Source: Paramicrosporidium saccamoebae KSL3 (taxonomy: Eukaryota; Fungi; Cryptomycota). From it: a stretch of 32,000 nucleotides of DNA. This document shows positions 4,071 through 31,119 of this stretch, piece by piece; position 1 is the first letter of the stretch, and every line of letters starts with the position of its first letter. Location: positions 1-32,000 of the forward strand of contig MTSL01000107.1 of assembly GCA_002794465.1 (NCBI GenBank), read 5' to 3'. The position numbers and the translations under genes were made by a program. The notes beneath the pieces are model-generated. The model saw only the letters and a program-made list of their open reading frames with translations, searched no databases and was not told the origin of the DNA.

Positions 4071-4256
4071 TGTGACGTAGAAGACTGATTAGTTGGGTAG
4101 TTGAGAATGGTTCCCTAGTTTGGAAAAGGGATAATCAGAACAATCGACGAAGGATAATGTTATTTGTGAGACTATAGATGGGTCGTTGGATTGACTGAAG
4201 AAATTCTCCTCTCTTCTCGCCCGACAGTCCATACTATTTATCCCCACTACGCGACA
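4071..4256 (+). mobile_element. Short TGT...ACA element, copy 1 (186 nt); MITE or solo-LTR-like
   Basis: Begins TGTGACGTAG and ends CTACGCGACA. Its last ~35 nt (GACAGTCCATACTATTTATCCCCACTACGC) match the reverse complement of 27335-27370. Flanks CTTT/CCAA give no TSD. Confidence 0.65.
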
Positions 4257-4287
4257 CCAATATACTTTTGTACACTAATTGCCTAGT

Positions 4288-5187
4288 TTATTCACTATCA
4301 TCACATTGGTCATGGGCATCTGTTGGCTCCTTGGGCTCGAGTGCTTCACTAAACTGTGTGGCCATCTCAATGTGCATCATTATATTCTGCAACGAACTCT
4401 CCTTTTTAATGTTAAGAGGAATAAAGTTGACCATGTCAAACTCGTCAATGAGCTGTACAATCGCTCTGTTTAGCTCTAGAAACTTGGGTCGGGTGCTGTC
4501 AGACATTTGCTCATTAAGGAGACTTGGATCGGGATAAAAGTACCGATGAAGATGGTGCAAGTCGTCTCCCACATCCTCGTCGTCCTTTTCGTCAGTGTCG
4601 CCTCCATCTCGCCTCGATTCCAAAAGATCCATCTTGGAAATCACATTCAGATGTGGTATTCCTATTTGCAGCATGGCAGAGGTGGCAGTGAGCACACCAG
4701 CAAAAAACTTTGTGACATCCTGGAGGAACAAACTCTCCATCAAGTAAATGCCGCATGGCTTGTAATCGGCCGTTTGGAATACCGACACGATTCGCGACAT
4801 AATGTCCGAGTGAGTGTAGAGCTCGATTTGGCCTGGACAGTCGACAATAAGAAATTCGTCTTGATACTCGCCCAAATCCGTGGTGAGCCACTCAATATTC
4901 TCCAAGAGATATTCAAGACAAAACATGAGACCACCGTTTGGACCATATTGCAACTCTTCCATGGCATCCTCAACGGCGATAAGCTCCTTGATATCTTTGG
5001 ACGGTTCATAATCAAAATGGTCAGCCGCAGGGTCGAGGTTGATCAAATGGGCAACTCTACCCAGACTTTCACAATGTTGTATCAGCGCTGAACAAAAAGT
5101 AGACTATTACGTTAGTGAATATTGGCTAATAACAACCTTTCCAGAGCCAGCAGGGCCCATGATGAACAAAGCCGCACCAGATGACAT
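4288..5187 (-). CDS. GPN3: GPN-loop GTPase 3; 1 intron (5104-5136)
   Basis: Spliced N-terminus MSSGAALFIMGPAGSGK|STFCSALIQH. Motifs INLDPAA, YGPNGGLMFCLEYL, DCPGQIELYTH and VISKMDL; the C-terminal EPKEP matches the GPN3 subfamily. Confidence 0.95.
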
Positions 5188-5270
5188 TTGTGACCCATCC
5201 CCTGCATGCCACCCTAAATGGCATGATCTGGTAGCCGCGGCATGTGATGAGAGTGGGTAGTTGAAAGTAT

Positions 5271-5599
5271 TGTTGCGTAGTGAAAACGACGCTAAAACAC
5301 AAGTATGGTATATTAAAGTGTCAATCTCTCCGTTTTTTGTCTCTGATTCTTTTCCCCACATTGGTCCATCACGTATCATCCAACCAATCGTTTCATTTCT
5401 TTGCAGCTGGGAAAAGACTTGCTTACTATCAATCCACCCAACCGCACTACACTGTCAATCCACCCAACCGCACTGCACTGGTAATTTACCCAACCACACA
5501 ATCACATAACCACACAACCACACAATCACACAACCACATAACCACACAACCACACAACCATACAACCATACAACCATACAACCACACAACCACGTTACA
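5271..5599 (-). mobile_element. Short TGT...ACA element, copy 2 (329 nt), flanked by a GTAT TSD and carrying subterminal tandem repeats
   Basis: Forward strand reads GTAT|TGTTGCGTAG...CCACGTTACA|GTAT. The left end is identical to the left end at 27330. Confidence 0.75.
5429..5593. repeat. Minisatellite: two 26-nt units then an 8-nt CAACCA(C/T)A array, inside the element above
   Basis: TCAATCCACCCAACCGCACT(A/G)CACTG occurs twice (5429-5480), followed by roughly a dozen CAACCACA/CAACCATA/CAATCACA units. Confidence 0.9.
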
Positions 5600-5626
5600 G
5601 TATCAAATCTACCTTGATCACCCTAA

Positions 5627-6902
5627 CTACTCTATTTTTTCAAAACATGCTACAAAAAATCCATTCATCCGATCTGCCTTGGGGTCAGCTCTTATGACGT
5701 CATTTCCAAAGGAATATTCGGGGAAACCACGCCTTGGCCATAACGGGAGAGGGTACGGGACAAGCTGAAAAGCTGGCTCGGCTTCGAGGACTTGTCGAAC
5801 TACCTCTTCGTTTTCCTCCTTATGGACTGAGCAAGTGGAATAGACTACCCTCTTCATGTTTGGAAACTGCATGGCGTGCCTCAGAATCATGCATTGGAAA
5901 TTCGACAACGACTGCAGTCGATCTGAATCATAAGTGTCGGTATTTTCAAAGTCTTCCAACATTCCACTACCAGAGCAGCTGGGATCTACTAATCCATATT
6001 CAATCTGTGGGTAATCAGCTGGGTTAGTCTTGAGAAAGTCCATGTTTGCAATCGTCACATGAGTGCACTCGTGCTTCCTAATAGTTTCGGCCAAAATTTT
6101 GAACCGTTTAGGATCCCTCTCAAAGGCACAGACGGAGCCGGAGGACCCCACAGCAGCTGCAAGTTGTGTAGTCTTGTTTCCTGGAGCAGCACAAGCATCC
6201 AACACCGAGGCTCCCGCTGGTGGCTGTAACACGGCGACGGGTATACAACTAGCCTTGTCCTGCAAAACAATTTGTCCTTTGCAGTACATTTCATTCTTTG
6301 TCAAGTCGGTTCCTGGAGGAAATACCAAGAGCCCGCCAATGTGTTCATCTAATGAAAAGCATCGCCCAGACTCGGGAAGACAGCCGTCGAGATATTCATA
6401 GCCCTCGTCTTTGAATTTCTGGATGCATTCGGCCGTCGAAAGGGCCAACGTGTTGATCCGGACGTATCGCATGGGCCTGGGCACATTTTCCTGTGGCGAT
6501 CGCAATTTAGACAACACATACTCTGCTTTTATGCGCGTCTTATGACGTGATATGGGCTCCCACAGCTTTGCACTGCATTCAGGGACTCGGTCATTCACGA
6601 GGTCATGCGCAAGAACAATCGCCAAGCCCGGACGAATCTAAAAATTCCGTAAAATGCCTGCTGTACCTTTCGTTCCTGCTTGAAGAACATGGATTTTTCC
6701 AAGGCTTCGTTTATCCACTTGAAATCTACACAATCAACTTTTAGCATTCAAGAGTACTTTTGCACGTCTCAGTGACGAGTGCAAATAGGGCCTTCTTATT
6801 ACGATATCTCGAACCGTAGCAAAGCGTCTTAATTCTTCCCTTTCCGTTTCGTACGGAATCTACAATAGAAGCGGCTTCGTAGTACAGTCCATCATTTGTC
6901 AT
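5627..6902 (-). CDS. NSUN5: rRNA cytosine-C5 methyltransferase NSUN5/Rcm1; 2 introns (6726-6757, 6638-6666)
   Basis: Spliced N-terminus MTNDGLYYEAASIV...KALFALVTETCKNFKWINEAL...ERKIRPGLAIVLAHDL. Motifs RYVRINTL, LQDKASC, DACAAPGNKTTQLA, DPSCSGSG and VVYSTCSVHKEENE. Confidence 0.95.
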
Positions 6903-6936
6903 TTTAAAACCAACAGAGTCAGGCACCCCTTGCTCA

Positions 6937-7920
6937 ATGACGAACCGGGTCGCAGCACCAAAACTGTCTGGCAAAGACGTAGTATCAGACACGCCACTTT
7001 CGGACCAGAACGTGGCACCAAAACTATCGGTCAAGACACTATCTGACCGTGTCATTTCTATCGAATTAGCGTCCGAGATAAAATCCATTGGGGATGTAAA
7101 GAGTTATTTGGAGAGGCATGGCGTAGTGTCAGCTCAGAAGCAGACACTTATTTCTTGTGGCCGCGTGCTCTTGGACCATGAGCCTGTTCCGGCGCCCGAT
7201 AGCGTCATTCATTTATTCTATTACGAACCGACCGCGCTTATTGCTGACCCCATTGAGGCAGCCGCCGACTGGGACACTAAGAACAGGATGAAGGTATTCA
7301 AGGGACTCTACTTGTTCTCCATCCGCAAGTTCCACGAGGCTGCACCCTTCCTGATTGATTCCCTGACAACATTTAGCGAAACCTCTTTTATTCCGTTCAA
7401 GGACTGTGTAAAATATGCTGCCATTGCATCCATGCTAGTGTTGGACCGACCAACCATACTCAAGACACTTGTCAAGTCTCCCGAGGTTCTGGAAGTCATC
7501 AATGACCTGCCCCACATGGAAGCCTACATCAACTCCCTCTACAACTGCCGCTACCGTGAATTTTTCCTGGCTCTCGGATCGTTGGAGAGTGAAATGAAGA
7601 ATGACTGGCTAATCGAGCCACATGTCCAGTACATCATCAAGGAAATGCGGATCCGTGCCTACACTCAAATTATGCAATCATATCGTAGTCTCACTCTCGA
7701 CTCTATGGCAAAGTCGTTTGGCGTGACTGCCGACTTTATTGACCGCGAGATAAGTCGTTTCATTGCAGCCGGACGACTGAACTGCGTGATTGACAAAGTG
7801 GCAGGACTAGTCATTACCAGTCCTCCAGATCAGCGAAACACAGAGTATGTAGCTCTCATAAAGCAAAGCGATGCTCTTGCCGCACGAATGCAAAAATTGG
7901 GACGCATCCTCAGCTACTGA
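6937..7920 (+). CDS. RPN7: Ubiquitin-like domain fused to the C-terminal (PCI-containing) half of proteasome lid subunit Rpn7/PSMD6
   Basis: From about 7252 the sequence IEAAADWDTKNRMKVFKG...EMRIRAYTQIMQSYRSLTL...SRFIAAGRLNCVIDKV follows PSMD6/Rpn7. Codons at 7021-7221 resemble ubiquitin (VKTL...I.DVK...Q.LI..GR.L.D...S.IHL). Confidence 0.88.
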   Translation: MTNRVAAPKLSGKDVVSDTPLSDQNVAPKLSVKTLSDRVISIELASEIKSIGDVKSYLERHGVVSAQKQTLISCGRVLLDHEPVPAPDSVIHLFYYEPTALIADPIEAAADWDTKNRMKVFKGLYLFSIRKFHEAAPFLIDSLTTFSETSFIPFKDCVKYAAIASMLVLDRPTILKTLVKSPEVLEVINDLPHMEAYINSLYNCRYREFFLALGSLESEMKNDWLIEPHVQYIIKEMRIRAYTQIMQSYRSLTLDSMAKSFGVTADFIDREISRFIAAGRLNCVIDKVAGLVITSPPDQRNTEYVALIKQSDALAARMQKLGRILSY

Positions 7921-8184
7921 TTCAGTAAATACATCACGTAGTGATCTGTAAAGTAGTGGAATAATGATCGGATGAAAGGACTCGGCCTATAACGGTGCCA
8001 AATACTTTGATAAATATATTATAACTATGATTTGTCCTGCACCACCCATTATTAGCCATATCCATAATCATGATCTTGCATTACCATTTATATTTTATGC
8101 ATTATCCCATTATAACTCAAGCCTCTCACCCTCACACATACCTCTTACTCCCCTCACATACACAACTCGCCCCTTCCATCTCAT

Positions 8185-8208
8185 CCCACCCCACCCCACC
8201 CCACCCCA
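8185..8208. repeat. (CCCCA)n tract; G-quadruplex-capable on the minus strand
   Basis: CCCACCCCACCCCACCCCACCCCA, about 145 nt upstream of the ubiquitin ATG. Confidence 0.8.
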
Positions 8209-8267
8209 CTTTACAAATAAACGCCACAATTGGCCATTTGAGCAAATTTGGAAATTGTGGGCTGTGA

Positions 8268-9047
<780 letters not shown>

Positions 9048-9128
9048 ATAAAGAGTCATTATGAGCGGCTAAAAAGTTGGTAACTTATGAAAGCTTGCCA
9101 TAATTACAACTGATTTTAACATACTCAC

Positions 9129-9200
9129 AGCTCTTGACAACTCTTTGACAACTCTTTGACAGCTCTTTGACAACTCTTTATACTCTCTCATACTCTCTCA
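9129..9200. repeat. 11-nt minisatellite (GACAACTCTTT, about 4 copies) plus ATACTCTCTC repeats
   Basis: Read directly in the gap between the convergent UBI and RAD23 stop codons. Confidence 0.8.
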
Positions 9201-9221
9201 CAATAGACCATTTATATACTT

Positions 9222-10207
9222 TCACAGATCCTGATCATTTAAATGTTCCAGCAAATAATTGGCTGCCAATTCTTCATTCTTGTCGCAGGCAAAGAAGGCT
9301 TCAACGACATGCGCTCGTCCGAAACCCATCGACTCTAAGCGTTCAATGGCCTGACGATCTTCTTCAGAAACTTGCAGTACTTGAGCACCAGGAGGAAGCT
9401 CTCCATCATCACCATCGCCTCCGTCATCTTCTTCTTCGTTACTCTCCTCACCCTCACCCTCTCCCTCTCCCTCGCCGTCGGGGTTGGCCCCTTCCATGAT
9501 CAGGGCATAGAATTCTTCGCGATTCTGTTCAATCAACTGCAGAATCTCGGGGCTGTTTTGGCTCAGCTGCTCGATTATTGGCCCCAGCATTTGTGGGTTT
9601 TGTTGAATCAGAGAACGAAGCTGTTGGAACTGAGGGTCGTTTCTCAAAAAGTCCAGAGATCCGGATGATTCATGATGGGCCATGGGTGCTTCATCCTCTT
9701 CCGCAGGCAGCATTCCGGTCGTCAAGTATTCAACGGCACGCTCTGGATTATTAAAGGACGCTCTCATGGCGGCCATGACTTCTTCCTTTCCAAATCCCAT
9801 ATCAACTAGCTTTCCCACGGCATCCTCATAGGCTTCCCCAGTCACCAGCTTGGATTCTGCGTCACCAGTGGCAGACTGAACAACCGGTGTAGCTGGAGTG
9901 GCTGAGGTGGCTCGAGTAGTTGTTCCTGCGGAAACTGGCTTGGGCGTCACAGTCATCAAAACAACAAAATCTCCCTCTTTCAGAGCCGTTTGAGAAATGA
10001 CCTGCTCATTCTCCAAAACTTTGCCTGCATGGATCAGTTTCTGGCGCTCCACGGGGGTATTTTTCGATTCACCCATTTGGGCGATGCGCTCCTTGGCGTT
10101 CAGCACCTAACACTCAATAAATATTCGTCGTGTCCTTTTACCGTTTCATCAGGAGTGACTTCAAGCGCAAATTGGCTTTGTTGTAGCGTCTTGATTACAA
10201 TTCTCAT
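9222..10207 (-). CDS. RAD23: UV excision repair / proteasome shuttle protein Rad23; 1 intron (10107-10141)
   Basis: UBL MRIVIKTLQQSQFALEVTPDET|VLNAKERI...QKLIHAGKVL; UBA1 (LVDMGF...SFNNPERAVEYL); XPC-binding LDFLRNDPQFQQLR; UBA2 (LESMGF...ACDKNEELAANYL). Confidence 0.97.
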
Positions 10208-10240
10208 TGACCCGGCTGCTTGAAACCCCGGTTGTTCCAG

Positions 10241-12235: not shown

Positions 12236-12283
12236 CGTCATAAATAAACGATGACATGGCACACTTTATTTCGAAACTTGTAT

Positions 12284-12694: not shown

Positions 12695-12818
12695 TAGGAG
12701 GACACCCCGGCTAGTGGGTGGTAGTTGATGGTTAGTGGTTGGTCAGATTTCCTGTTATAGAAGTTGTCTGAATGCAGACTCGGGATTTTAGCTCAGGAGC
12801 CTATAGCGCCGCATTAAT

Positions 12819-13070: not shown

Positions 13071-13344
13071 TTCTCTATAAACATGACGGTATATCGTGCC
13101 ATGGGCCTATATATAATGAATCAAAAATGTCGTGCCGTGGACTTTTATATGACAGATTAAATTCTCCAATCTTTGCCGCTGTTGTGTGGTGCGAGTATGA
13201 CGTGTCGTTATGAATTGTTTATTACCAACCAGTGTACCATTTTATGAATTTGCCGAAATATCCAAACATTGTAGAGTCAATATTCCCATTCCTCGCCTCT
13301 GAAACTCTTTTCCATATCCAGTCAAATATTCAACACTCAGCACC

Positions 13345-13400
13345 CAACAAACCCAATACACCCAACACCCAACAAACCCAATACACTCAACACATCCAGC
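13345..13400. repeat. C/A-rich degenerate tandem repeat (ACCCAACAAACCCAATACAC twice plus partial copies)
   Basis: Read directly, just beyond the stop codon of the minus-strand glycosyltransferase-like gene. Confidence 0.7.
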
Positions 13401-13415
13401 ACCATAAATCTCGGA

Positions 13416-16250
13416 TCACACATGTGCTAGCTTTTGGGCTTGTAGTGTAGTCTGTTCTTGATACCACTGGTTGATGCGTCTTTGGCCGTCTATCACGGCT
13501 TCCCTCCATCTGGGTTGGTCACAAATGCTATATCGGGTGGCGGATGCCCCATTTCGAATCGTGGACCCCGCATGACACTTTGTTGCCTCGGGTCCATAGA
13601 CGCTGGTAATCCAGTTGTCCGAGTACCAGTCCTTGATCTCAAGGGGAAAGTACCAGTGGAATATTTCATGATGCTTCCTTGATACAAAACTTTGCGTAAG
13701 CAAACGACACTGCCACAGCCGGTCGTTGGGTCCCACAACACCGAAATCATCATTATCGCGAAGTGTCTTTACAAACGTTGTAGTCCATCCGGGACTCTCA
13801 ACCGTTACATCATCATTGACCTGATAAAAGTAGTCATTTCCATCATGTACAGCATCGATAAACAGAATATTCCATAAGAGGGTTATGCATTTTGCCGTCG
13901 GCAACAGGTGATACTTGATTAGGACGGATTCTTTATGCGGTCCAAGCACTACATCGATGGCCTTTTGCATCTCGATCCGGTTCATGTCCAAGAGGGGATC
14001 GTCCCGGTCGTAGCCAATGTAGATGGAGTATTGAAACTTGCTCCACTCGTCCATCTTAATACTAGACACCATTGATCGCAAAAAGTTGTTTACAAGGTGC
14101 GCCGTGGCAGGAGTGTCCTCCTTCTTGTTCTTGCTTGGTATGAGAAAGGCTATCTTTGTTTTTTGACAAGCACGGATAATTGCCTCATCTACTGCTCCCC
14201 TTGCCCAGCTGGAAACATGGCCGCCAGCAAATGCCACAGGATTGTACATAATCTCGGGTCTGATGGTGAGATGGCAATATTGCTGACTACGCTTTGCATG
14301 ATCGTCCGGTTTGGGAAGTAGACTTTTCATTGAGAATACTTTGGCTGCATCCTGCACAGTGCCAATCATGTCATAGTCCACAGGCTTGTTTTGAGAATCT
14401 TTGCCGTGACACGGCAGCCCTTTGACGCGACGTAACCTCTCCGAGTGAACGCGGGAGAATACCTTGCGATCATATCCTTCGACTACCAACGAAGGGAGCT
14501 GATTATCAATAGACAGCCGGGCAAGAATTAGGCCGTCCTTCATTAATATCCTCCTCATATCTTCCAGAATCCCCGTGTCTGGAATGACCGTCTTGGGGCT
14601 AATCCACAAGGCGCTGCCAAAGCGATCTGTAAAAATCTCCAAGACTGAGAGCCGAATATCTACATTGTCCAAACTAATCTTGGTATCCAAATCCATGCCA
14701 AATAAGAGAGCCTCAAGCTCATAATAGTCAACATGCCGCCACAGTTTGATCATTTCGATATTCCCGCTATCAAGGTTCGATCCAATCACTAGGATGAGGG
14801 GCGGCGGTTCCATCGGAGTGACAGAAATTGCGCCGTGAATGGAACCAACAATCTCACGCAGTAACCAAATGTCTTCAGTACTACTGATTGCAGTGATAAT
14901 TACAAGCGGGGGTGGCTTCAAAGTGCCTCCACGGACCAGCGCCTGCAGCCAGTTGGCAGTCTTTGTCAAGTCTCCAATTGATCCCAAACGATAAAAATGA
15001 TGACACCCGTCTTGAACGGCACTCATGCTGGAAATGTCCTCAACCCTCCCCGAAACACTAATACCCTCCTTTTTGGAAGTTTTAATGTAAATATCCGTGG
15101 CCAGCTTTTTCGCTCGAAGCAGCGTCTTGAGCACGTCCGACTCATTTCCAGAATAGTCTGCAACATACAATATGATTAGATAATTGCCATGCTCCTGTCG
15201 ACTGAGCGACTCTAAGAGAATTTCAAGCCGATCCTGCACAAAGGCCGCATACTTTTCTTCTGGACCAATGTCAAGACTGAGACCAATGCGCAGCTTTTGG
15301 GAATTTGCAACTGAATCTCGGTCTTCCGGTTCCAGATACTCAAACAAGTCCGACAACAGCGGGTTTGCAACTGGATAGTTGGCTGTCCGTCCCGAGGTGG
15401 TAGGAAGCAATCGCGCCTGCACTCGAGGGTCCACCTTTTGAAGCCCAACCGATCCCCTCTTCATGATCGCCTGACTGAGCGGCTTCTGAATCTTGGTTTC
15501 TGATGCACAAAATATGCCTCTTCTGCAGTCTAAATGGGGTTTAACTCTTTCAAGAAATCCGGATCGCGTGTACGCCAGCAACGGAAAAATGTGCTCGGCA
15601 GAAACGGGATTCATTTTTGTCGACCGCCCCGTATAGTCGGGTCCGGGCACAATGACCTCGCCCGTCTTTGCAATAGTTTTTAACACTTCCGGAAGAGTAT
15701 TCTTCTCAATCGCATAGCCAACATCCACGTAGACTACCACAGGAAATTCCACCAAGAGATATTCCAAAATGTTTGGCAATGCCCAAGTGGCCTTGGCGGA
15801 CAGCTCTTTCATTCCTGCAGGCAAATTGACCAAAGCTTCAATTTCCAGAGGCTTCACCAGTCGCAGTAGCTTTAATGCCGCTATGGTTTGAGCATCCAGC
15901 GAGCCAAAATAGCCGACATAAATAAATGCAGGTTCCATCTTCCGAATAATATGACTTTGGAGGGACTAGGCAATGGTTAGGGCTGCAACAAATGGTACTT
16001 GGACTAAAGCTTCTAGACGCGACCATGCTGAAGCATCTGACAATATTGTCACATAGGCATTCCCACGAGTCCGGTTCGAATCGGTCGGGATGAACAGCTT
16101 CTCCCTGCCATCTCTAAACTCTGCTGGCAGGCCAAATTTCAGTTTCGCTGGACTTTTAGTGACAATAGTCCGCCACGCCACAACCGCGACGAAAATGACA
16201 ATGGCTCCGATGAAAACTTTCAGGCCCCGACGGGGAACATTTAGGGCCAT
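13416..16250 (-). CDS. Type II membrane glycosyltransferase-like protein GT1, with a doubled two-domain module; 1 intron (15966-15998)
   Basis: N-terminal TM (KVFIGAIVIFVAVVAW). The intron joins LEALVQ|SLQSHIIRKMEP in frame. The C-terminal GT-A-like domain has YIGYD, YFYQVNDD, GVVGP and DWYSDNW. Confidence 0.85.
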
Positions 16251-16378
16251 CTCGCGTCGGGATAAACAACCCACCAATTAACTTGGTGTCAGTTCTCCAT
16301 ATAGAAATGGCCATATTACCATTTTGGGACGCATTGTTGCATTGTAAGGAAGGTAGTGCTCCGTGAGCCAGGACAAAC

Positions 16379-18622
16379 ATGCGACGTGGATCTTATTCAG
16401 GCATACTCATTTTCGCAGTTGCGTGCTTTGCGGCGACAATGGTGATCATTGCCCTTTGGCCCAGCTCTGCAAAGAGTCAAGCTGGCACAAAGCCGATCGG
16501 AAAGGCGCCTACTCTTGAAGAATTGCTGCTGAGCAGCAGAATGCAAGACGAGGAATGCCAGCAGAACATGGATCATATTAATGAACCATCTGAAGGGACA
16601 GTGGAGCAGCAAGCCGAGTTCTTAAAGCGCTTTGAAAAGTCGGCCCGAGAGATGAAACCAAGCGACCCGGGGGGCAGTAATCATGCAGCAAATAGTGTCG
16701 ATCTTGTAGCAAGCGGCTTTGATTTTGTGGCAAACAATGTTGCAGTGGGTAGCACAGCGGGTAATAATGTCGATCCAAGCCCAAATGTTGTCAAAACACC
16801 TCCAAGAAATCTCACATTGAGCAATTCACATGCGGCCAGTCCCCCTTCAAGCAATCCATACCCAAACAACACAAATCCAAGCACCTCGCGTCCAAATGAA
16901 CAACTCGGCAAAGAAATACCAGGCCTCATGGAAGAATACTATGACGGGACAGCGGGACCACGTTTTCCCCACGCCAGAAATCCTACTGAATTTGAAGATC
17001 TGGTCATCTTTACCATCATCCCGTCAATTGAAAATCGGGCATCTTTGGTCCTCCTTAGAGACTTTGTCGGGGTACCATTCTCCCATGGCCTTTTCTTACT
17101 GTAGGGACTACATCAGCTCAGACAAGGAAGACACCACACTCCAACGATTGAAATTTTCACTCCCACCTTGCTTAGCAACATCCCCGACGATATTCTAGAG
17201 GAATTGAGTTGGTGGAATGGGGTTCAGCTGAAGAACATCCACAATTATCTCGGATTGCCCGTCAGCAACGAGACCATCCTGACGTCAAATGAACAACATA
17301 TTCGGCTAGCTTTGCACAGTCGGCTCGTCAAAGAGCATGGTCATTCATTCTGGATCAAATTCGGCTACGTAGTGGAGCCGGAACGAATCGGAATCTATCG
17401 CGCTGAACAGAGCGGATCTGCGGCAAACATTCTCGAAGCACATGCGCGTGGACGCAATGAGGTGATGAAGATGGCCAAAGTCCTCAAGGTTCACGGCTAC
17501 GTCCTGGGTCAGCAAAGCGATCCAGTGCAATACTCTACTGGCAAGGCAGTTGTAGACCGAAAGAAAGCCGAGGAGCAATCTCTTGTGGCAGGGATCTATG
17601 CCCCAAAGAGTCTTGTAGTCGAGGGGTATTCGTTGGAAAAGGGCCTCAAATACATTGACGAGCAACTAAAATGTCTCATCACTCCGAACCAATGTTCCAG
17701 CCCAAACATGGAATACATTTATGACGCATCCGTGTACAGCGTCTTTCCAAGCGATCCCAACTCACACGCGGGATGCATTGTCGACGTCCGAGAAGAGGCC
17801 ATCACCAGTACAATTCTTGTCAACGAGGTTGCGTCAACTCTGGCCAACAATGCAACAAAGGCCATTGTTGCCAAGAACGGGAAAAAGGTTGCAGTAGCCT
17901 TCCCAACCACCTCCAAAGGAATGAAAAAGGGTGAAGATCCAGTGTTCCTCAGAGTTCTGTTGCCTTCCCTAATAAGTTCAGTCACTCTAGAAGAATTCTC
18001 GTCCACAATGTTTACCGTGTACATTGGATTCGACCATGGCGATCCAGTGTTTGAGAATCCCACTCTCCGAAGCAAATACTTGCAGAAGGCTGTAGAGATT
18101 ATTGGCAACAATCCAGTGCAGGTCAAGATGCTGCAGCTCCCCAATGCCAAACGGGTGGCTCTTTTGTGGAATCTGCTCTATTTGCATGCCCTCCGCGAGG
18201 GCGCCGAATACTTTTACCAGCTCAATGATGATCTCCATCTTGAGACTACGGGCTGGCTGACCTACTTTACATCCACCCTAGATGCACATGGCGGGTTTGG
18301 TGTAGTGGGTCCTGCTGACTACCACAACGGGCTCAACTGCGCCATCCTAACTCAGTCCATGGTCACGCCAGTTCACTATGAGATTTTCGGGATGCTCTAC
18401 CCTGTGGAACTTAAAGACTGGAAGAGCGATCGCTGGCTCACCTATGTGTATCAGCCAAACGACACTCACTGCAGACAGGACATTATTGCAAATAACGGCG
18501 GAGCACCAACACGCTACCAGTACTGCGAGTTCCTCAGCTATGTCATCTACGTGGATGCTGGAAAACGTCGAATTGCCGAATGGAAGGCGAAAAAATTGGC
18601 ACGGGAAAAGTCGGCATTGTGA
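16379..18622 (+). CDS. Type II membrane glycosyltransferase-like protein GT2; 1 intron (17072-17104)
   Basis: TM segment GILIFAVACFAATMVIIALW and a Pro/Ser/Asn stem. The intron joins LRDFVG|GLHQLR. C-terminal domain VAVAFPTTSKG, YIGFD, YFYQLNDD, GVVGPAD, DWKSDRW. Confidence 0.87.
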
Positions 18623-19676: not shown

Positions 19677-19682
19677 TAGTGT

Positions 19683-19742
19683 TTTATGTGGTGTATGTGG
19701 TGCATAGGGTGCATGTGATGCATATGGTGTGTGTGGTGCTGT
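19683..19742. repeat. Degenerate 9-nt repeat (TGGTGCATG-like, about 6 copies) upstream of PAF1
   Basis: tggtgtatg tggtgcata gggtgcatg tgatgcata tggtgtgtg tggtgctg. Confidence 0.7.
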
Positions 19743-19926: not shown

Positions 19927-20182
19927 AAAAGTTGTTTGCCCTACTCTGCCAACATTTGTTCTGAATGACTGTGCCCATATGCACCCTTCCACCACACAGG
20001 GCGGAACGTTTTCGCTGCTGTGTTTCCACCCTCGCGCAGTACCGTCCTCATTGACCCAACCTCGCTAGCAACCGTTCCCAGCCGCTAGCAATGTTGACCC
20101 CGTGTCTGGCGGGTGCAGGCATTGTGCCGATTCAGAACCAGTGGTTCACAGAGACGAACTGTCCAACTAAAGAGTACCAGGG
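19927..20182 (-). ncRNA. Signal recognition particle RNA (7SL/scR1-type); 5' end uncertain (20167-20182)
   Basis: Helix 8 CGC-GAGG-GUG-GAAA-CAC-AGCA-GCG (20013-20036). Helix 6 is a 12-bp hairpin with a GGAA loop (20063-20090). Helix-5 pairings: 20130-20138 with 19958-19966 and 20111-20117 with 19980-19986. UGUGA Alu motif at 20146-20150 and a TTTT terminator at 19927-19930. Confidence 0.88.
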
Positions 20183-20237
20183 ATTTTTACTTTATTAATT
20201 ACCCAATTATTTGCCATGTCGTTTTTGTGGGATTGTT

Positions 20238-21293
20238 TTACGGCACAATCTCGGCTACAATTTGTTTGCATTCGACTACTTTGGCCATTGCGGCATCAAA
20301 TATTCGGTCGTATTTTTCCACCACTACCTCCAACGCTTTTATTTCCTCCTGGACCTGGATTGCAGTCTCGTCAGTATCCAATGCAGACATCTTTTCGTCC
20401 ATCATAATCGTTTTAATATCACTCTGATACTGGGATTCCCGGGTGTGGACGTTCTCCAGCTTCATCATTCCATAGTCTCCCCCCAAATCATCCAGCGCTC
20501 CAGAACCGTGCAAATTCAGAGTCTCCAATTCGCGGTCCAGTAATCTGCGTGAAAAGTCCTGGTTCTGCAGCTCTTGCTCAAGCTTCTGTCGAGCATACTC
20601 TAGACGGCTAATGGTGTCTGACTTGGATTCGAGCATCGTTTCGAGCCTTGCAACCTTTTCGCTGCGCTCTGGAGAGATCATTGTGCGCATCGTGTCCTCG
20701 TCCTCTAGGATGGTGGCAGCACATTCGTCGTGTATCGACATTGTCTCCTCGATATCTTTGAGAACGGCGAGCTCATCTGATTCCGCACGATGCATCATCC
20801 CATTCGTTCCAGCTCGGCGATTCTGTTCGTGCAATATGCGTCGAACCAACAGGCTTGCAAGATTGAACTTGTCCGCATCGTTTGCGAGGTGACTGCGCAG
20901 CAATATAGAGCTTGCCATTTGCAACTTTTCGTTGAGATCGTAATCCTGTACTTCTGGAATAGTCCATGCTGCTGACTCTTCATGATGCATGGTCTCGAGA
21001 TTTGACAAGTGCCCCATCCTTGTCATACGTCTTTTCACAATTGTTTCTTTGTGGAGTTGGAAGCTTAGACCAGAACGGCCCGTCGATTTCACCTGACCTT
21101 GGGCCTCAAGTCTGCGAAGTGCCGCCAAAAGTCGTTTTTTCCAATTGGCGGGGAATGTATATTTTCCAACAAACTGCTTTGACACCAGGTTAACCAGAGA
21201 CAAGTAATGCATGGTCGAACATTGCGAACTTTTCATGAGTCGAGTGGCAATTGCCGCATAGGCTGGGTGGTGCGAGTGTCTGTTGCTCGTCAT
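20238..21293 (-). CDS. Protein with a linker-histone (H15)-like winged-helix N-terminus and a C-terminal coiled coil (351 aa)
   Basis: HPAYAAIA...FPANWKKRLLAALRRLEAQGQVKSTGRSGLSFQL resembles the H1 globular domain; the C-terminal half is heptad-rich. Confidence 0.75.
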   Translation of the reverse strand: MTSNRHSHHPAYAAIATRLMKSSQCSTMHYLSLVNLVSKQFVGKYTFPANWKKRLLAALRRLEAQGQVKSTGRSGLSFQLHKETIVKRRMTRMGHLSNLETMHHEESAAWTIPEVQDYDLNEKLQMASSILLRSHLANDADKFNLASLLVRRILHEQNRRAGTNGMMHRAESDELAVLKDIEETMSIHDECAATILEDEDTMRTMISPERSEKVARLETMLESKSDTISRLEYARQKLEQELQNQDFSRRLLDRELETLNLHGSGALDDLGGDYGMMKLENVHTRESQYQSDIKTIMMDEKMSALDTDETAIQVQEEIKALEVVVEKYDRIFDAAMAKVVECKQIVAEIVP

Positions 21294-21335
21294 AGACCGC
21301 TGGCAGTTTTAGCTTTATTGATGAGCTTATTTAAG

Positions 21336-22295
21336 TCATATCTGTAGAACCTCGGCACATTGATCAAACAAGTCTTGCAGATTAGATGCAGCTTCGCGCT
21401 GGAGTCTGATTTGCTCTTCCAGTTGGGATTTTCTATTTTTTTGCTCCAAGAGACGCTGCTGCCTCGCCAATGAACCATTCTGCCGAAAAGGTGCCTCTTC
21501 TGGGATGGCCTCGCCGTAATATTCAAAATTATCATCATGTGCTTCTTGGAAAGATAGGCGTCTCTCGGTGAAATCGCGTTTTTTAGAGCAAATCTGCTCT
21601 TCAAGCTTCTTAATGGACCGAGTCCCATCGTTTACCTTGGCTTCCAATTGTTGGATAATGTCTTGAAGCTTTGCTGCTCTTGTGTCTGAATCCATGATAA
21701 TTTCCTCAAAGTCCTTTTCCCCTGCTCCCGAGGCCTCGTAGTGTTCTTCAAAATGATCCTCTGACTGTTTAGACACAGTCACAGTCTCCCCAAATCCGAT
21801 CGCTTCTTCTGTTTTTAAGCTTTCAAGCAGGAATTCAGTCAATTCGAGGGCCTCGGCGTCAACTTCCTTCTCATGCGCGCTGCCCATCAGTCTGCGTAGA
21901 TACGCTTCTAGATCCTCAAATTCCAAAGCGTCCCCAATGGATGATAATAGAGGCGGCAAGGTTTCTGGCTCGCCGTGAAGATGAACTTTTCGATAGTTAC
22001 GGGTTGGAGTTGTAGGCGGAGTTATTGCCTCAGTGTGGTCCAGCATCAATTGTTCGGCTGATGTTTTTCTATTCCATCGATACGAACTTTTCGAGCCATT
22101 CACTCTCATGATGACATTTCTTTCAACCATCCTCGTCAATGCTTTTGTAGTAAAGGCTTTCCAGTTCGTGGGCAGTCTCAGGGGACCTTGGACATCTCTC
22201 TCTAGCGTAGTCAGAATGCTCCGCCAGTGGATGGTTCTTGTTTGTGACTTTGCAAATACGTGCTCCACAATTTGTTCATAGCTTGGTCTCCTCAT
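21336..22295 (-). CDS. Tandem paralog: H15-like winged helix plus coiled coil (~319 aa)
   Basis: First ATG at 22295: MRRPSYEQIVEHVF...LPTNWKAFTTKALTRMVERNVIMRVNGSKSSYRW. It shares the P.NWK....AL.R motif with its neighbour. Confidence 0.75.
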   Translation of the reverse strand: MRRPSYEQIVEHVFAKSQTRTIHWRSILTTLERDVQGPLRLPTNWKAFTTKALTRMVERNVIMRVNGSKSSYRWNRKTSAEQLMLDHTEAITPPTTPTRNYRKVHLHGEPETLPPLLSSIGDALEFEDLEAYLRRLMGSAHEKEVDAEALELTEFLLESLKTEEAIGFGETVTVSKQSEDHFEEHYEASGAGEKDFEEIIMDSDTRAAKLQDIIQQLEAKVNDGTRSIKKLEEQICSKKRDFTERRLSFQEAHDDNFEYYGEAIPEEAPFRQNGSLARQQRLLEQKNRKSQLEEQIRLQREAASNLQDLFDQCAEVLQI

Positions 22296-22385
22296 ATTTG
22301 CTCGCCGGGTCAAAGTTTACGAGCTTAATGTACCCGTGTAGCCAGAACCATGACTAAGCCTGACGGCACCATGTGATTGGCGGGA

Positions 22386-23612: not shown

Positions 23613-23648
23613 TTTGTAGCTATAATGCTGGGAATTTTATTGCACTAC

Positions 23649-24809: not shown

Positions 24810-25027
24810 TGTCAAGATATTCGTGTCGTCCAAGAGACTGAAATAACTATATGCTCGCCTCTGACAATTCGAATCAGGAATCATTTGTAACCAATCAGAT
24901 TTGCCACATTGTGTAAAAGTAGAACACCAATCCAATCCAATCTAATCTAATCCAACCCAATCCAGTCAGTCCAGGTCATACCTCACAGTATCCTGGGTTT
25001 TTAAACACAAGCATGCAGATAGTGCTG

Positions 25028-25834: not shown

Positions 25835-25888
25835 TTGATTGAAACTGACCAATCAGCGCCGGGGTAACTGAACTTGACCGCGTTCCGT

Positions 25889-27189
25889 ATGAAACACACA
25901 CTCAAAGGTATTCTGTCCAAAAGTAAAGTAACCTGTTTGTAGGAGGGGTCTGGACCAATGTTGAAGATGAAATTCTCAAAGTGGCTGTTATGAAGTACGG
26001 CCGGAACCAGTGGGCACGCATCTCCTCTCTGCTGGTGCGCAAAACCCCCAAGCAGTGCAAGGCCCGCTGGAACGAATGGCTTGACCCACGGATCAAAAAG
26101 ACTGAGTGGAGCAAAGAGGAGGATGAAAAACTGCTGCATCTTGCCAAAGTGTTTCCCAGTCAATGGGGCACCATTTCCGACCTTGTGGGACGGACCTCAC
26201 AAATGTGTCTGGAGAGATATGAGAGACTTTTGGATGCTGCACAGAACGAGGAGGGGGAGGGGGCAGGCACCACACTTTCCGAGGCCCGAAAGTTGAGGCC
26301 GGGAGAGATAGACCCGAGTCCCGAGACCAAAGCCGCCCGTCCAGATCCAATAGATATGGACGAGGATGAGAAGGAAATGTTGGCAGAGGCACGTGCACGT
26401 TTGGCCAATACACAGGGCAAAAAGGCCAAGAGGAAGGCGAGGGAGAAGCTTCTGGACGAGGCGAGACGAGCAGCTGCCCTGCAGAAAAGGAAAGAATTGA
26501 TCGTTGCCGGTCTGCCAGGAATCGCAGTCAAGCAGACGGGGATGGACTATAACAACGAAATTCCCTTTGAACGGAAACCACAGCCCGGCCTATACGATCC
26601 CACTGAAGAGTTGGAAGGGGAAAGGCGGAATCATGAGGAACAGTCGCGGACAAGACAGAAAATAGGACCGACAAAAGAGGCCATCGAATTGGCAGAGCGA
26701 CGAAAGGACGTCCAGAAACAAAAGGAGCGTGTGGAAAAGGGTCATCTTCCTGCTGCTTTGGAACGCAAGCTCCGAGAACAGCAAGCAGCAAGGAGAGTGC
26801 CTCTCAGTCTCCCTGCTCCTCAGATTGGGGATGTCGAGTTGGAGCAAATTGCCAAGATTGGATATGCCAGTGAAGCTGCCAGATTGGCCGCTGAAGAATC
26901 TGCCACTCCGGCAGCATCCACCCTCCGGCCTAACGTGGCTATGACACCGCTATCTCATCGTGGAGGATCATATGGAGGCGCTACGCCGATGAGTTCCACT
27001 ATGAGTGTCACAACTGTAGGCAGAACCCCACTCCGCGATCAGTTGGGGATTAACGCAAGCATCAGACAACACGAACCGTTGGATTCTGCGTCAATGTTGG
27101 ATGCTTTTAATAAGAATCGACTAAGAGAAGCGTTCAAGTCGCTTCCCAAGCCCAAAAATGATTTTGACATTGTAGTTCCCGAAGAATAA
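25889..27189 (+). CDS. CDC5: Pre-mRNA splicing factor Cdc5/Cef1 (NTC), C-terminally short; 1 intron (25908-25942)
   Basis: MKHTLKG|[30 protein letters not shown]...[23 protein letters not shown] (two Myb repeats), [37 protein letters not shown]; ends at [14 protein letters not shown]. Confidence 0.96.
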
Positions 27190-27257
27190 ATCAACTGTTG
27201 CATAGCTTGAACTGTTTACGGGGAGTCTCGGTAATTGCAAGAGCCCATGCCCACTAT

Positions 27258-27576
27258 CTATGGCTCACAGATAAAAGGTCTTTCGATAGTTGTGGGGATC
27301 TACTACATTATATTTACCCTTGATGCTATTGTTGCGTAGTGGGGGATAAATAGTATAGTATGGACTGTCAGGCGGAAAGGGGGGGGGTTTGTTCACTGCT
27401 AATCCTAAAATAGTATGGATACACATCCCACTGTCCTCAAGTACCCAGCAACTAGGTCTTCTCCGAACTAATCAACCCTCTGCTTCTACGTCACACTATG
27501 ATCCACGGATAAAGGATCTCTCGATAGTAGTGGGGATCTGGTATATTTACCCTTGATGGTATGATCCCCAGATAAA
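27258..27576. repeat. Tandem array of ~63-68-nt units interrupted by a mobile element
   Basis: Unit 1 at 27258-27325, unit 2 at 27496-27558 and a partial unit 3 at 27559-27576. Shared core CTATG...GATAAA..GG..TCT.TCGATAGT.GTGGGGATCT...TATATTTACCCTTGATG. Confidence 0.85.
27330..27495 (-). mobile_element. Short TGT...ACA element, copy 3 (166 nt), with a CTAT TSD
   Basis: CTAT|TGTTGCGTAG...CTACGTCACA|CTAT. Its 66-nt core (27389-27454) matches 31015-31080 in inverted orientation with 5 mismatches. Confidence 0.85.
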
Positions 27577-27706
27577 TGAGCTCGCGGTAGCCATGATAAT
27601 ATACCATGTCTATTATATCTATGCCAGGCCATTCAATATCACGCTATGCTATGGATGGTGCACGGATAAGTAACTTTTTACCTCGGCAATTAATTTGTTA
27701 ACATAG

Positions 27707-28093
27707 ATGCTGCTACTCCGCTCGAGACTTCTGCCTCGTTTCGTCCCCCGAACCATAATCGTGCGCCATTCGCATGAAAACCCATATCCCACCATTCCCG
27801 AGTACGAATCACGCTGGACAACCTTTTTCAACTCTTCGGCCTACGACCAGTTTGAACTCCAACGGGGTCTGAACCATGCATTCAGTTTCGATATTGTGCC
27901 CACTGTGCCCGTGCTGGAGGCTGCATTGAGGGCGGCGAGACGACTAGGCGACTATGCCGCGGCGATGCGCGTATTTGGAGCGTTGAGGCAAAAGTGCAAG
28001 GACGACAAGGAGTATGAAGGGTATGTGAGACATCTAGACTCGCTCAAAACAGAACTTGGAATCTCGGCACCTGAAGACATTGGCCGAATGTAA
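27707..28093 (+). CDS. COX5A: Cytochrome c oxidase subunit 5A (yeast Cox6)
   Basis: Arg/Leu-rich mitochondrial presequence, then DQFELQRGLNHAFSFDIVPTVPVLEAALRAARRLGDYAAAMRVF...LKTELGISAPE. Confidence 0.93.
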   Translation: MLLLRSRLLPRFVPRTIIVRHSHENPYPTIPEYESRWTTFFNSSAYDQFELQRGLNHAFSFDIVPTVPVLEAALRAARRLGDYAAAMRVFGALRQKCKDDKEYEGYVRHLDSLKTELGISAPEDIGRM

Positions 28094-28226
28094 ACGTCAA
28101 TTAAATACTTGGCATTTCCAAGTTTGTCCCTAATACTATGCGAGTCTACTAATATATACCCGAGACCTCAATATTGCAAATTTCTAGCTTTATTAGCATG
28201 CGGATCTGCGCTGTAGAAATCCATTT

Positions 28227-30002
28227 CTAATCGTCGTACGGATCGTCAGCTTCGGTGGCATTAGTCCACATTGAGGGCTCCATGACCCCGTCAGCATTCT
28301 TCAATCTCTTCTGATAATGCAGTGTCAGTGGCTTAAACGACGCCTTTTTGCACGGCGTGTATCTGGGTAGGTATCCCAGGTTAGAATAACGTCCGTTCCA
28401 GATGACCATTTTCTGGAAACAGCGCATATATGTTGCATAGACCAAGGTGAGCCAGGTATCACATTGCCAATTCCTGAACTCGGGGGGAAAGTACCAGCCA
28501 AATATCTGCCAATGCGTCCTGGTCACCATGGTCATGGTCATTATTTTGCAATCAAACACCGGGTCGTTGGGACCCACCACGCCCAGACCTTGCTGACGGT
28601 CCAGCTGGCTGGCAAAGGTGTGCAACCAGCCAAATGAACTGAACCGCAGATCGTCATTTACTTGGTAAAAGTACTGGCAACCATCGGCCATGGCCATTGA
28701 GAAGAGAACATTCCAAATGTAGGCTACTGCACCCGACACTCCCAGGCGGACAAAATTGAGACGGACATTTGGGATCCCAAGATTGCGGAATGTTGCCTTT
28801 GCTTTCCCAACGATCCGTTTCATCAACTCGCGATTCTCATAGACCGGATCACCGTCATCGTAGCCCAGATAGAGGGACAATTCATAGCGCCTCAAGTCCT
28901 TCCATCCCAGCGAACGGGCCAGTGTAGGCAGAAAGATGCCCAAGAAGGGCAGATCCCAAAAGTTTGTGACTCCGCGTGAAGTTGTTGGGAATGCCAGTGC
29001 CACCCGTTTTAGAGGCTTCTTGGCTGCTACAATGGGCGGACGACGGTCCTTGAAGAATCGCCATCCATGATGTGCATCGTCCCGGAAACAAAGATTGCAC
29101 ATGTTGATTTTGTCCTCATCATCCCGTGGGGCCACCTGGTCAATCCCAAAGTCACTAGCCAATTCCAGGCGGCTCTCCCACTCTGCACAGCCCTTGGCTA
29201 AATATGGATCCCAGATGGCCTGAATCTCGCATCGGAAGGGCTCCATCTCTGCCACATAACCCTCCGCAATGACCTCACCATAGCACGAGTTCAGACGGAA
29301 ATAGCCATCAGTCTTTAACTTTTCTCTCATTCTCCCAAAAGTCTTTGCCCACATGGCGTTTCCTGTTTTCAAGAACACGGCGTGGCCATGCATTTGGACC
29401 ATTCGGCTAATAAGTGTTGCCCGTAGCGACTTTTCCCCTTCTGCGCTGAAAATTTCCCTATCAATTACCGAGTTCAAGTCTTCAGTCTTATTCAATGCCT
29501 GCATCCCCTCAAATATCCCATATGGTGTCAACACATCTTTGATATCCTGGTACACCACGTTACGCCAGAGCGTCATTTCATCAATTTCGCGGCGCTGAAA
29601 ACCATGGGCAAAGACGTGGATGATGGGCGGATGTTGGGAGACCAGTGGTCGCCAACGATGGATGGAACCCACAAGGTCGCGCAACTCGCGAAATTGGCCT
29701 TTGCCGGCAATCGTGAGGAACACTATATCTCGATACGGATCGATAATCTTTCGCACCCCCCATGGCATGGCAAGCGCCTTGGCAGGAGCTTTGACTGCGC
29801 TGGGCACAATTACATCCTTCTCAATCGTCTTCTTTTGTTGTGTGCCTGACACAATTGGCTTGACCCCTTCTGGTTCAAATACTGTTAGATTCCCATCCAC
29901 CTCTCCTACCATTGACTCTTCAATAACCAGCCAAGCAACTAGCCCCGCCACTACCCCGATAATGAACAGTACTATCCACCATCGGTTCCGAAGCGCAGCC
30001 AT
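28227..30002 (-). CDS. Type II membrane glycosyltransferase-like protein GT3 (intronless, 591 aa)
   Basis: TM segment WWIVLFIIGVVAGLVAWLVI, LRDLVGSIH domain, then RVALAFPTTSRG, YLGYDDGD, YFYQVNDD, GVVGPND and NWQCDTW. Confidence 0.87.
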   Translation of the reverse strand: MAALRNRWWIVLFIIGVVAGLVAWLVIEESMVGEVDGNLTVFEPEGVKPIVSGTQQKKTIEKDVIVPSAVKAPAKALAMPWGVRKIIDPYRDIVFLTIAGKGQFRELRDLVGSIHRWRPLVSQHPPIIHVFAHGFQRREIDEMTLWRNVVYQDIKDVLTPYGIFEGMQALNKTEDLNSVIDREIFSAEGEKSLRATLISRMVQMHGHAVFLKTGNAMWAKTFGRMREKLKTDGYFRLNSCYGEVIAEGYVAEMEPFRCEIQAIWDPYLAKGCAEWESRLELASDFGIDQVAPRDDEDKINMCNLCFRDDAHHGWRFFKDRRPPIVAAKKPLKRVALAFPTTSRGVTNFWDLPFLGIFLPTLARSLGWKDLRRYELSLYLGYDDGDPVYENRELMKRIVGKAKATFRNLGIPNVRLNFVRLGVSGAVAYIWNVLFSMAMADGCQYFYQVNDDLRFSSFGWLHTFASQLDRQQGLGVVGPNDPVFDCKIMTMTMVTRTHWQIFGWYFPPEFRNWQCDTWLTLVYATYMRCFQKMVIWNGRYSNLGYLPRYTPCKKASFKPLTLHYQKRLKNADGVMEPSMWTNATEADDPYDD

Positions 30003-30061
30003 CCTCTTGTTTACCCACTACACTTGCCATATTAAGCAATCCCCGCAGACCGGGGCTTGAA

Positions 30062-30700
30062 ATGACAAAGTCCAACACTATGTATCCCGCGTTCCAAGTG
30101 CTCTCTGGTAAGCGCGTCATCCTTGGAAGCACTTCGTCTAGTCGCATTTCCATCTTTACCCAGCTCGGTCTAGACTATGAGCTACTGTCGTCCAATTTTG
30201 AAGAAGATTATGACAAGGCTGCATTCAAAACACCATTGGCATATTGTGCTGCAACTTGTGCAAAGAAGGCCGAGATTGTCCTCGAAATGAGCAGCGGAAC
30301 CGCCAGTCTAATCGTGTGCGCCGATACGATTATCAGCTGTAATGGTGTGATCTACGAAAAACCAATGGACCGGGCTGATGCTGTGCGTATCCTATCAGAA
30401 CTTGGTGGCAATACTATCGAAGTGATTACGGCCGTGTCCTTTTATTACCGCACTGCCGCTGGCTACCAACATTGTGCATTTGAAGACGTGACCTTAATGC
30501 ACATGTTGCCGTATGATGACAAAATGATTGCCGCATACCTTGACACGGGTGAAGGAATGTCCTACTCTGGTGCCCTAAGCTACCAAGGAGCTGGATTCCT
30601 ACTCGTCAAAGGAATCAATGGATGTTTTTACAATCTAAGGGGTTTCCCAGCCCCGAGATTCTATCAAGAATACGCTAAAATAGCCCATCTCATTGTGTGA
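30062..30700 (+). CDS. Maf-family nucleoside triphosphate pyrophosphatase, paralog 1 (intronless)
   Basis: RVILGSTSSSR, SNFEED, KKAE, CADTII, YEKPMDRADA, YQG and GCFYNLRGFP. Confidence 0.9.
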   Translation: MTKSNTMYPAFQVLSGKRVILGSTSSSRISIFTQLGLDYELLSSNFEEDYDKAAFKTPLAYCAATCAKKAEIVLEMSSGTASLIVCADTIISCNGVIYEKPMDRADAVRILSELGGNTIEVITAVSFYYRTAAGYQHCAFEDVTLMHMLPYDDKMIAAYLDTGEGMSYSGALSYQGAGFLLVKGINGCFYNLRGFPAPRFYQEYAKIAHLIV

Positions 30701-30915
30701 AATGTTAGCAGCCGAAATTCGTGACCAATCATAACGGAGAAGCGACACTGTGAGATGGTACAACTAAGGACCACAGTGATCCCAATAAAGGGTCGTGTTG
30801 ATGAGCAAATTAGTTTTATTAAAGTATGTGGCATATAGACAGCCATCCTTACTGTGATTGGAATGGCTTATAGGATCGCTATCTGAGTTGGATTCACTAG
30901 TGATAGGTGATACTG

Positions 30916-31119
30916 TGTGACGTAGAGGCAGAGGCAGAGGATCGATTGATTAGTCGGGTATTTGACGTAGAGGCAGAGGATTGATTAGTCGGGTATTTGA
31001 CGTAGAGGGTTGATTAGTTGCTGGATATTTGAGGACAGTGAGATGTGTATCCATACTATTCTAGGATCAGCAGTGAACAACGCCGCTTCCCGTCTGTGGA
31101 TTATCCCCGCTACGCGACA
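30916..31119 (+). mobile_element. Short TGT...ACA element, copy 4 (~204 nt), with a triplicated left subterminal unit
   Basis: TGTGACGTAG...CTACGCGACA. The TGACGTAGAGG...TTGATTAGT unit occurs three times. The core matches copy 3. No clean TSD. Confidence 0.8.

Follow-up and report, generated by a model that had tools for sequence, protein, structure and literature searches.

Short TGT...ACA insertions with retroviral-integrase-type ends in the compact genome of Paramicrosporidium saccamoebae

Known relatives and the locus studied

Ty3/gypsy (Metaviridae) retrotransposons leave solo long terminal repeats (LTRs), for example the Ty3-derived sigma elements of Saccharomyces cerevisiae. These are single units of a few hundred nucleotides (nt) scattered in the spacers of compact genomes, mostly as relics. 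LTR elements in general are marked by tg...ca ends and by a target-site duplication of 4-6 bp, and solo LTRs are a common degenerate product (PMC2253517). TGTNR termini are also found in the Ginger1 and Ginger2/TDD DNA transposons, for which non-autonomous copies with only their ends in common are known (PMC2836005), while the very small, non-coding TRIM/SMART retrotransposons adjoin genes and depend on enzymes supplied in trans (PMC3281118). Here, we describe a family of five short TGT...ACA elements (E1-E5) in positions 1-32000 of contig MTSL01000107.1 (69,936 nt; assembly GCA_002794465.1) of Paramicrosporidium saccamoebae KSL3. This whole 32,000-nt stretch is referred to as the window; contig positions 32001-40700 were examined in addition, giving a total of 40.7 kb read from the 7.3-Mb assembly.

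P. saccamoebae KSL3 is an intranuclear parasite of amoebae assigned to the Rozellomycota (genome accession MTSL00000000), and its genome paper attributes 76% of the genome to gene space. Among public contigs, MTSL01000107.1 alone encodes an open reading frame of 840 amino acids that lies in the window. Our literature search found no paper describing transposons of Paramicrosporidium. The sequence-only reading that first drew attention to these elements regarded the family as possibly undescribed, and for the P. saccamoebae genome it is new.

The elements resemble Ty3/gypsy solo LTRs in their size and placement, in their short imperfect terminal inverted repeat (TIR) of the form TGTNR...YNACA, in the duplication of two copies (E2 and E3), which lies within 4-6 bp, and in a directional interior of variable length. 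Ty3 itself makes 5-bp duplications and targets RNA polymerase III genes, in contrast to the 4-bp duplications observed here and a 32-kb window in which ARAGORN found no tRNA gene. With Ginger1 and metazoan Ginger2 the elements share both the termini and the 4-bp duplication (PMC2836005). Their resemblance to TRIM/SMART elements lies in being very small, non-coding, close to genes and, presumably, served by enzymes in trans (PMC3281118).

A family of integrase-type insertions

Every copy begins with TGT followed by N and R and finishes with Y, N and ACA (Table 1). A degenerate pattern describing the 10-nt ends matches the window ten times against 0.50 matches expected, a count reached in 0 of 100 shuffles, and eight of the ten matches are the paired ends of E1-E4. 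A 19-nt interior core occurs three times, in E3, E4 and E5, with at most one mismatch, where 0.01 occurrences are expected. E1-E4 had been proposed from the sequence alone, and their coordinates, lengths and ends were as claimed. The fifth, decayed copy (E5) was recognised by repeat finding and mismatch searches and carries the interior core at 783-801. A strict structural scan returned E3 as its sole match, and no further copies were found in the rest of the window or in contig positions 32001-40700. The family comprises five copies and 1,099 nt, or 2.7% of the 40.7 kb, which agrees with the earlier description of a dense family in a compact genome.

Table 1. Elements, target-site duplications and interrupted host repeat in the window. 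Strands are relative to E1, the orientation reference.
Feature	Positions	Length	Strand	Sequence or description
E1	4071-4256	186 nt	+	start TGTGACGTAG, end CTACGCGACA
E2	5271-5599	329 nt	-	window reading: start TGTTGCGTAG, end CCACGTTACA
E3	27330-27495	166 nt	-	window reading: start TGTTGCGTAG, end CTACGTCACA; minus-strand reading TGTGACGTAG...CACTACGCAACA
E4	30916-31119	204 nt	+	start TGTGACGTAG, end CTACGCGACA
E5 (decayed copy)	668-881	214 nt	+	3' end CCACGTAACA; degenerate 5' end TGTTGTAGGT
E2 target-site duplication	left 5267-5270, right 5600-5603	4 bp		GTAT, exact, abutting
E3 target-site duplication	left 27326-27329, right 27496-27499	4 bp		CTAT, exact, abutting
Host tandem repeat interrupted by E3	27266-27590	63-nt unit, 2.4 units		Tandem Repeats Finder on joined flanks

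Global alignment against shuffled sequences indicates that E1, E3 and E4 are homologous over their whole length (z = 6.3-13.8), with 92% identity between E3 and E4 over a 66-nt core, and that the interiors of the elements are directional. E5 is a distant member (z = 3.5-4.0 against E1, E3 and E4). E2 is an outlier with a z of at most 3.5, and the sequence it has in common with other copies is mainly that of the ends, where 12 nt match the 3' end of E3 exactly; judged by its sequence, E2 appears to belong to the family by its ends only. The imperfect TIR noted earlier was recovered in E1, E3 and E4 (8/10 matches each) and in E2 (7/10), but is reduced to 5/10 in E5, and in no copy does it extend past 10 nt. 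Two elements contain tandem repeats. In E4 they are limited to the 5' part, where a 35-45-nt unit is triplicated head-to-tail, its units beginning (T)TGACGTAGAGG at 30916, 30961 and 30996; in E2 they are limited to the 5' two-thirds and form a 26-nt x 2.9 array (5425-5499) and an 8-nt x 12.9 array (5491-5593). The longer flanks of the copies show no homology to one another.

The elements were also searched for the marks of other kinds of element. No fold signal was detected in any of them (z = -1.4 to +1.0 against shuffles), and no Rfam match falls within the elements, the sole Rfam match of the search being a signal recognition particle (SRP) RNA gene elsewhere in the window. ARAGORN and Rfam revealed no tRNA-like or 5S-like part, no copy carries an A-rich or simple-repeat tail, and terminal direct repeats are absent, with no element repeating a 5' segment at its 3' end. 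A DNA pattern joining the interior core to the 3' end had no match in JGI metagenome contigs, prokaryote genomes or IMG/VR.

The sequence-only reading had claimed exact target-site duplications, GTAT and CTAT, for two copies, and these were found at E2 and E3, respectively. Each is 4 bp long because the fifth base is mismatched; the E2 duplication lies between A and C and that of E3 between G and G. By our own arithmetic, the chance of two exact abutting 4-mers among five elements is ~1e-4. Both duplications match the STAT target preference that had been suggested, although with n = 2 a preference is not established.

E3 carries a record of its own insertion. When its flanks are joined minus one copy of the duplication, Tandem Repeats Finder recovers an uninterrupted 63-nt host repeat of 2.4 units running across the junction. 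The junction between repeat units reads TTGATGGTATGATCC where it is intact and TTGATGCTAT[E3]CTATGATCC where it is interrupted. The host tandem repeat is an internal empty-site control for E3.

Orthologous loci in uncultured relatives were reached with a profile of a three-member protein family without Pfam match and with two single-protein searches, and all contigs obtained in this way are syntenic with the window; a metagenome search with the back-translated GPN protein found nothing. In the closest relative, species A (JGI 3300042204; L006/L007), the GPN protein is 94% identical and the coding DNA 81-86% identical. Its E1 site is a 53-nt spacer without an element, compared with 343 nt in the window, and the coding flanks are conserved on both sides. 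On the species A contig that spans NSUN5, GPN and the carrier gene, the E2 site is a 183-nt spacer without an element, compared with 439 nt in the window. Species B (JGI 3300037657 and others; L003/L008) is represented by a 39-kb contig that keeps the gene order from RPN7 to beyond Maf, and here the Cef1-COX5A spacer at the E3 site measures 140 nt without an element, compared with 517 nt in the window. The empty-site comparison covers E1, E2 and E3 only. The E4 site falls outside it because species B has a single Maf gene (L008 9201-9848), and the searches yielded no relative covering the E5 site. A further relative (L012) also has no element, its contig ending before the E3 site. Across the relatives' loci (~50 kb of distinct sequence), the end pattern has 0 matches and there is no significant similarity to any element; a search of the relatives' contigs for TGT...ACA elements with duplications of an analogous kind returned one chance-level match.

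The elements are insertions, as is evident from the duplications, the restored host repeat and the empty sites in the relatives. The same observations uphold the proposal of a mobile insertion family with retroviral-integrase-type ends. The sequence-only reading had also named the finding that would count against it, the same sequence at orthologous loci, and the E1, E2 and E3 sites are element-free. Loss in the relative is a formal possibility for any single site taken alone. The spacers of species A have diverged too far for a base-by-base alignment, and the exact boundaries of the E1 insertion are therefore not readable from it.

Probable solo LTRs and competing explanations

On balance, the five elements are best interpreted as relics of a mobile family, probably solo LTRs or LTR remnants of Ty3/gypsy-type LTR retrotransposons. 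A single LTR is the best fit because the TIR is short and imperfect, the interior directional, the tandem repeats confined to the 5' part and the size 166-329 nt. A short TIR combined with a directional interior is LTR-like and unlike DNA-transposon derivatives, and tandem repeats in the 5' part are typical of U3 regions. The 4-bp duplications of E2 and E3 lie within the 4-6 bp range of LTR elements (PMC2253517). For E2, we favour descent from a lineage of its own with similar ends.

To account for solo LTRs, we infer an integrase, an RNA intermediate and a recombination that leaves one LTR. A retroviral-type (DDE) integrase would bind the two ~10-nt imperfect inverted ends (5' TGT.., 3' ..ACA), cut the target with a stagger of 4 bp and join it to the 3' CA ends, and repair of the resulting gaps would yield the 4-bp duplication. 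The coding interior would then be lost and a single LTR left behind, either when the two LTRs of a full-length copy recombined or through deletion under genome-size pressure. The differing interiors could reflect several diverged source lineages, together with gain of tandem repeats in the 5' (U3-like) part.

Several observations weigh against this assignment. Fungal Ty3/gypsy elements usually give 5-bp duplications. An exact abutting 4-bp duplication is absent from three of the five copies (E1, E4 and E5), the flanking 4-mers of E4 (ACTG/AGCG) and E5 (TAAC/TTAG) being without a match. Within the 40.7 kb, neither a full-length element nor mobile-element coding sequence (gag-pol, reverse transcriptase, RNase H, integrase) was seen, nor a primer-binding site (PBS) or polypurine tract (PPT), and alignment revealed no TATA or AATAAA/poly(A) signal conserved across copies. 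The genome paper reports a repeat content of 0.53%, mostly simple repeats, without mention of transposons, and its supplements have no reverse transcriptase or integrase entries. Shared ends with differing interiors are, moreover, also a hallmark of non-autonomous DNA transposons.

The flanks of the copies without a 4-bp duplication add to these difficulties. E1, E4 and E5 have a motif in common just outside the 5' TGT, which is of borderline significance: agreement is 10/11 between E1 and E5 (p ~0.002 per pair) and 9/11 between E1 and E4 (p ~0.02), among ~20 pairs tested. E1 is also bracketed by a 9-nt exact direct repeat, TACTTTTGT, at 4064-4072 and 4263-4271, which is not accounted for by a 4-bp duplication and whose left copy overlaps the first TGT. 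E1 likewise has the displaced repeat TACTTT (4064-4069 and 4263-4268), with its first copy next to the 5' end and its second 6 nt past the 3' end. When longer or displaced duplications were tested for E1, E4 and E5, E1 alone reached p ~0.016, with offsets allowed for; the corresponding repeat at E4 (GATACTG/GATGCTG) is not significant. The upstream motif and the displaced flank repeat, both of borderline significance, count against a simple solo-LTR model because that model does not predict them. Possible explanations are a target preference, 3' LTRs retaining a few internal nucleotides, another insertion route or chance.

The principal alternative, which we regard as unlikely, is that the elements are miniature non-autonomous DNA transposons, comparable to miniature inverted-repeat transposable elements, mobilised by cut-and-paste through an integrase-related DDE transposase that is Ginger2/TDD-like or an undescribed relative. 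Only the ~10-nt ends would then be needed in cis, leaving the interiors free to differ, as they do in E2 above all. The TGTNR ends fit, Ginger1 and Ginger2 also make 4-bp duplications, Ginger2 favours AT-rich targets, and a Ginger2-like protein is known in a fungus (PMC2836005). The small size of the elements, their position next to genes and the lack of reported retroelement genes for this genome are likewise consistent with such an origin. However, Ginger TIRs measure 40-270 bp (PMC2836005), compared with 10 nt at 7-8/10 matches in E1-E4. Ginger targets are CCGG/CCGT or RTATAY, from which GTAT and CTAT differ, albeit as two sites only, and no transposase was seen in the 40.7 kb. The strands form no hairpin (fold z about 0), E1, E3 and E4 are homologous along their entire directional length, and no excision footprint was recognised at the empty sites, where the spacers are too diverged to tell. 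The sequence-only reading had named both classes; of these, Ginger/TDD fails on TIR length, whereas a solo LTR fails on no tested feature, with mixed evidence from the duplication and from the U3-R-U5 organisation. A solo LTR is more likely than a miniature DNA transposon.

It is quite unlikely, in our judgement, that the elements are self-contained miniature units of ~170-330 nt, moved as such by an integrase-type enzyme through their ~10-nt ends, and not leftovers of long retroelements. Several diverged lineages of such units would have been active since the split from the nearest known relative, in a 7-Mb parasite genome reported as nearly repeat-free and possibly without an obvious autonomous partner.

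An improbable further explanation concerns only E1, E4 and E5, which may have arrived by another route or may be different remnants. Such copies could be 3' LTRs that kept a few internal nucleotides once the rest was deleted, insertions at a break, accompanied by filler and a longer duplication, or retroposons resembling short interspersed elements (SINEs) read on the opposite strand. The motif upstream of the 5' TGT points in this direction, as does the recurrence of the 5' flank 4-6 nt past the 3' ACA in E1 and E4, and the species A alignment is compatible with positions 4041-4070 lying inside or outside the inserted DNA. Against this, the statistics are borderline once the ~20 tested pairs are corrected for, and the E4 and E5 signals are individually not significant. 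The extra 3' nucleotides vary between copies, the tail and the tRNA-like or 5S-like part of a retroposon are missing, and E2 and E3 have clean 4-bp duplications with the same ends.

A non-mobile regulatory module or non-coding RNA family, for example clusters of ACGT-core bZIP sites, is very improbable and already largely refuted. TGACGT does occur in the ends and in the E4 repeat units, E5 contains CACGTG-type cores, and both E2 (83 nt away) and E4 (159 nt away) stand in sense orientation upstream of a start codon. However, three orthologous spacers lack the elements despite conserved gene order and coding flanks, and E3, flanked by its 4-bp duplication, splits a host tandem repeat. The elements occur in both orientations and three copies lie at most 31 nt from a stop codon, which argues against a promoter module; E1 has a gene 3' end on each side and E5 directly adjoins a stop codon. 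A structured RNA is further disfavoured by the lack of an Rfam match and of a fold signal.

The remaining candidates were rejected. A composite transposon formed by E1 and E2, inverted around the GPN gene, has no duplication at its outer ends, and the gene occupies the same place in element-free relatives. Targeting of tRNA genes finds no such gene in the window. In TRIM/SMART elements, two direct LTRs enclose a PBS and a PPT (PMC3281118). The elements described here have no terminal direct repeats and are therefore not miniature retrotransposons of that type; the arrays of E4 and E2 run head-to-tail within a single half. A SINE or other non-LTR retroposon is contradicted by the absence of a tail and of any part derived from tRNA, 5S or 7SL RNA.

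Genomic setting and neighbouring features

The family is a real one of integrase-type mobile insertions, new for P. saccamoebae and of a well-known kind; as an ordinary type of element, it holds nothing that would surprise a transposon specialist. Its interest lies in the host, as Paramicrosporidium serves as a reference for genome shrinkage between fungi and Microsporidia. The share of 2.7% of 40.7 kb, together with three empty sites, indicates that this lineage hosted integrase-type mobile elements that were missed by ordinary repeat masking. The difference from the 0.53% of published repeats implies either enrichment on this contig or copies so divergent that the repeat finder then used missed them. 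The elements could also act as presence/absence markers linking Paramicrosporidium isolates to their metagenome relatives.

All five elements occupy short intergenic spacers, with mixed orientation relative to the neighbouring genes. E1 lies between the convergent stop codons of a mitochondrial-carrier gene (3942-3944) and a GPN-loop GTPase gene (4288-4290), 31 nt from the latter. The spacer separating the GPN start (5185-5187) from the NSUN5 stop (5627-5629) is 439 nt long, and E2 takes up 329 nt of it. E3 lies in the Cef1-COX5A spacer. E4 has a tandem Maf paralog on either side, the second beginning 159 nt downstream of it. The 3' end of E5 directly adjoins the stop codon (882-884) of a minus-strand open reading frame of 632 amino acids (aa). 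A stop codon is thus within 0-31 nt of three copies. Since the elements approach stop codons so closely and occupy the greater part of some spacers, neighbouring genes may draw promoter or terminator sequence from them.

Among these neighbours, the Maf-like pair on either side of E4 (30062-30700 and 31278-31952, both +) is 58% identical, and the deposited gene model differs for the 632-aa reading frame beside E5. C/A-rich (on the other strand G/T-rich) microsatellite-like arrays occur in spacers at 5491-5593, the 8-nt array of E2, and at 8185-8209, 13333-13398, 19686-19739 and 24927-24964. The NSUN5-GPN spacer of species A contains (GGTGT)n (L007 460-485) roughly at the place of the E2 array, which may be coincidence or a local propensity.

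The metagenome and Logan contigs (L003, L004, L005, L006, L007, L008, L009, L010 and L012) represent at least four uncultured relatives of P. saccamoebae. They keep the gene order of the window over up to 39 kb and could be used for comparative genomics of a poorly sampled clade. Relatives are present in the JGI data sets 3300042204, 3300037657, 3300037044 and 3300063079 and in Logan DRR438482. In L012, the spacer upstream of a 599-aa gene (1-330) contains a direct repeat of ~160 nt that is unrelated to the TGT...ACA family.

The three-member family used as a search profile consists of paralogs without a Pfam match that are 25-34% identical (13416-15938, -; 16307-18622, +; 28227-30002, -). An invariant Y-F-Y-Q-x-N-D-D and other motifs give these proteins a glycosyltransferase-like look. 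Homologs were found only among metagenome and Logan proteins, and the family seems restricted to Paramicrosporidium-like organisms; one paralog sourced from NCBI belongs to another assembly and adds no P. saccamoebae sequence.

Two genes of the window are missing from the deposited gene calls. The SRP RNA gene (Rfam RF00017, 88.3 bits, full length) lies at 19927-20212 (-), in the spacer between Paf1 and a 351-aa gene, and over 103 nt it shares 88% identity with species B (L003 13336-13438). A polyubiquitin gene at 8352-9034 (+) consists of three 228-nt units with 81-85% DNA identity, and perhaps escaped annotation through masking as a repeat. Finally, two adjacent genes without Pfam match, at 20238-21293 (-) and 21336-22313 (-), are weak paralogs with 23% identity over 91 N-terminal residues.

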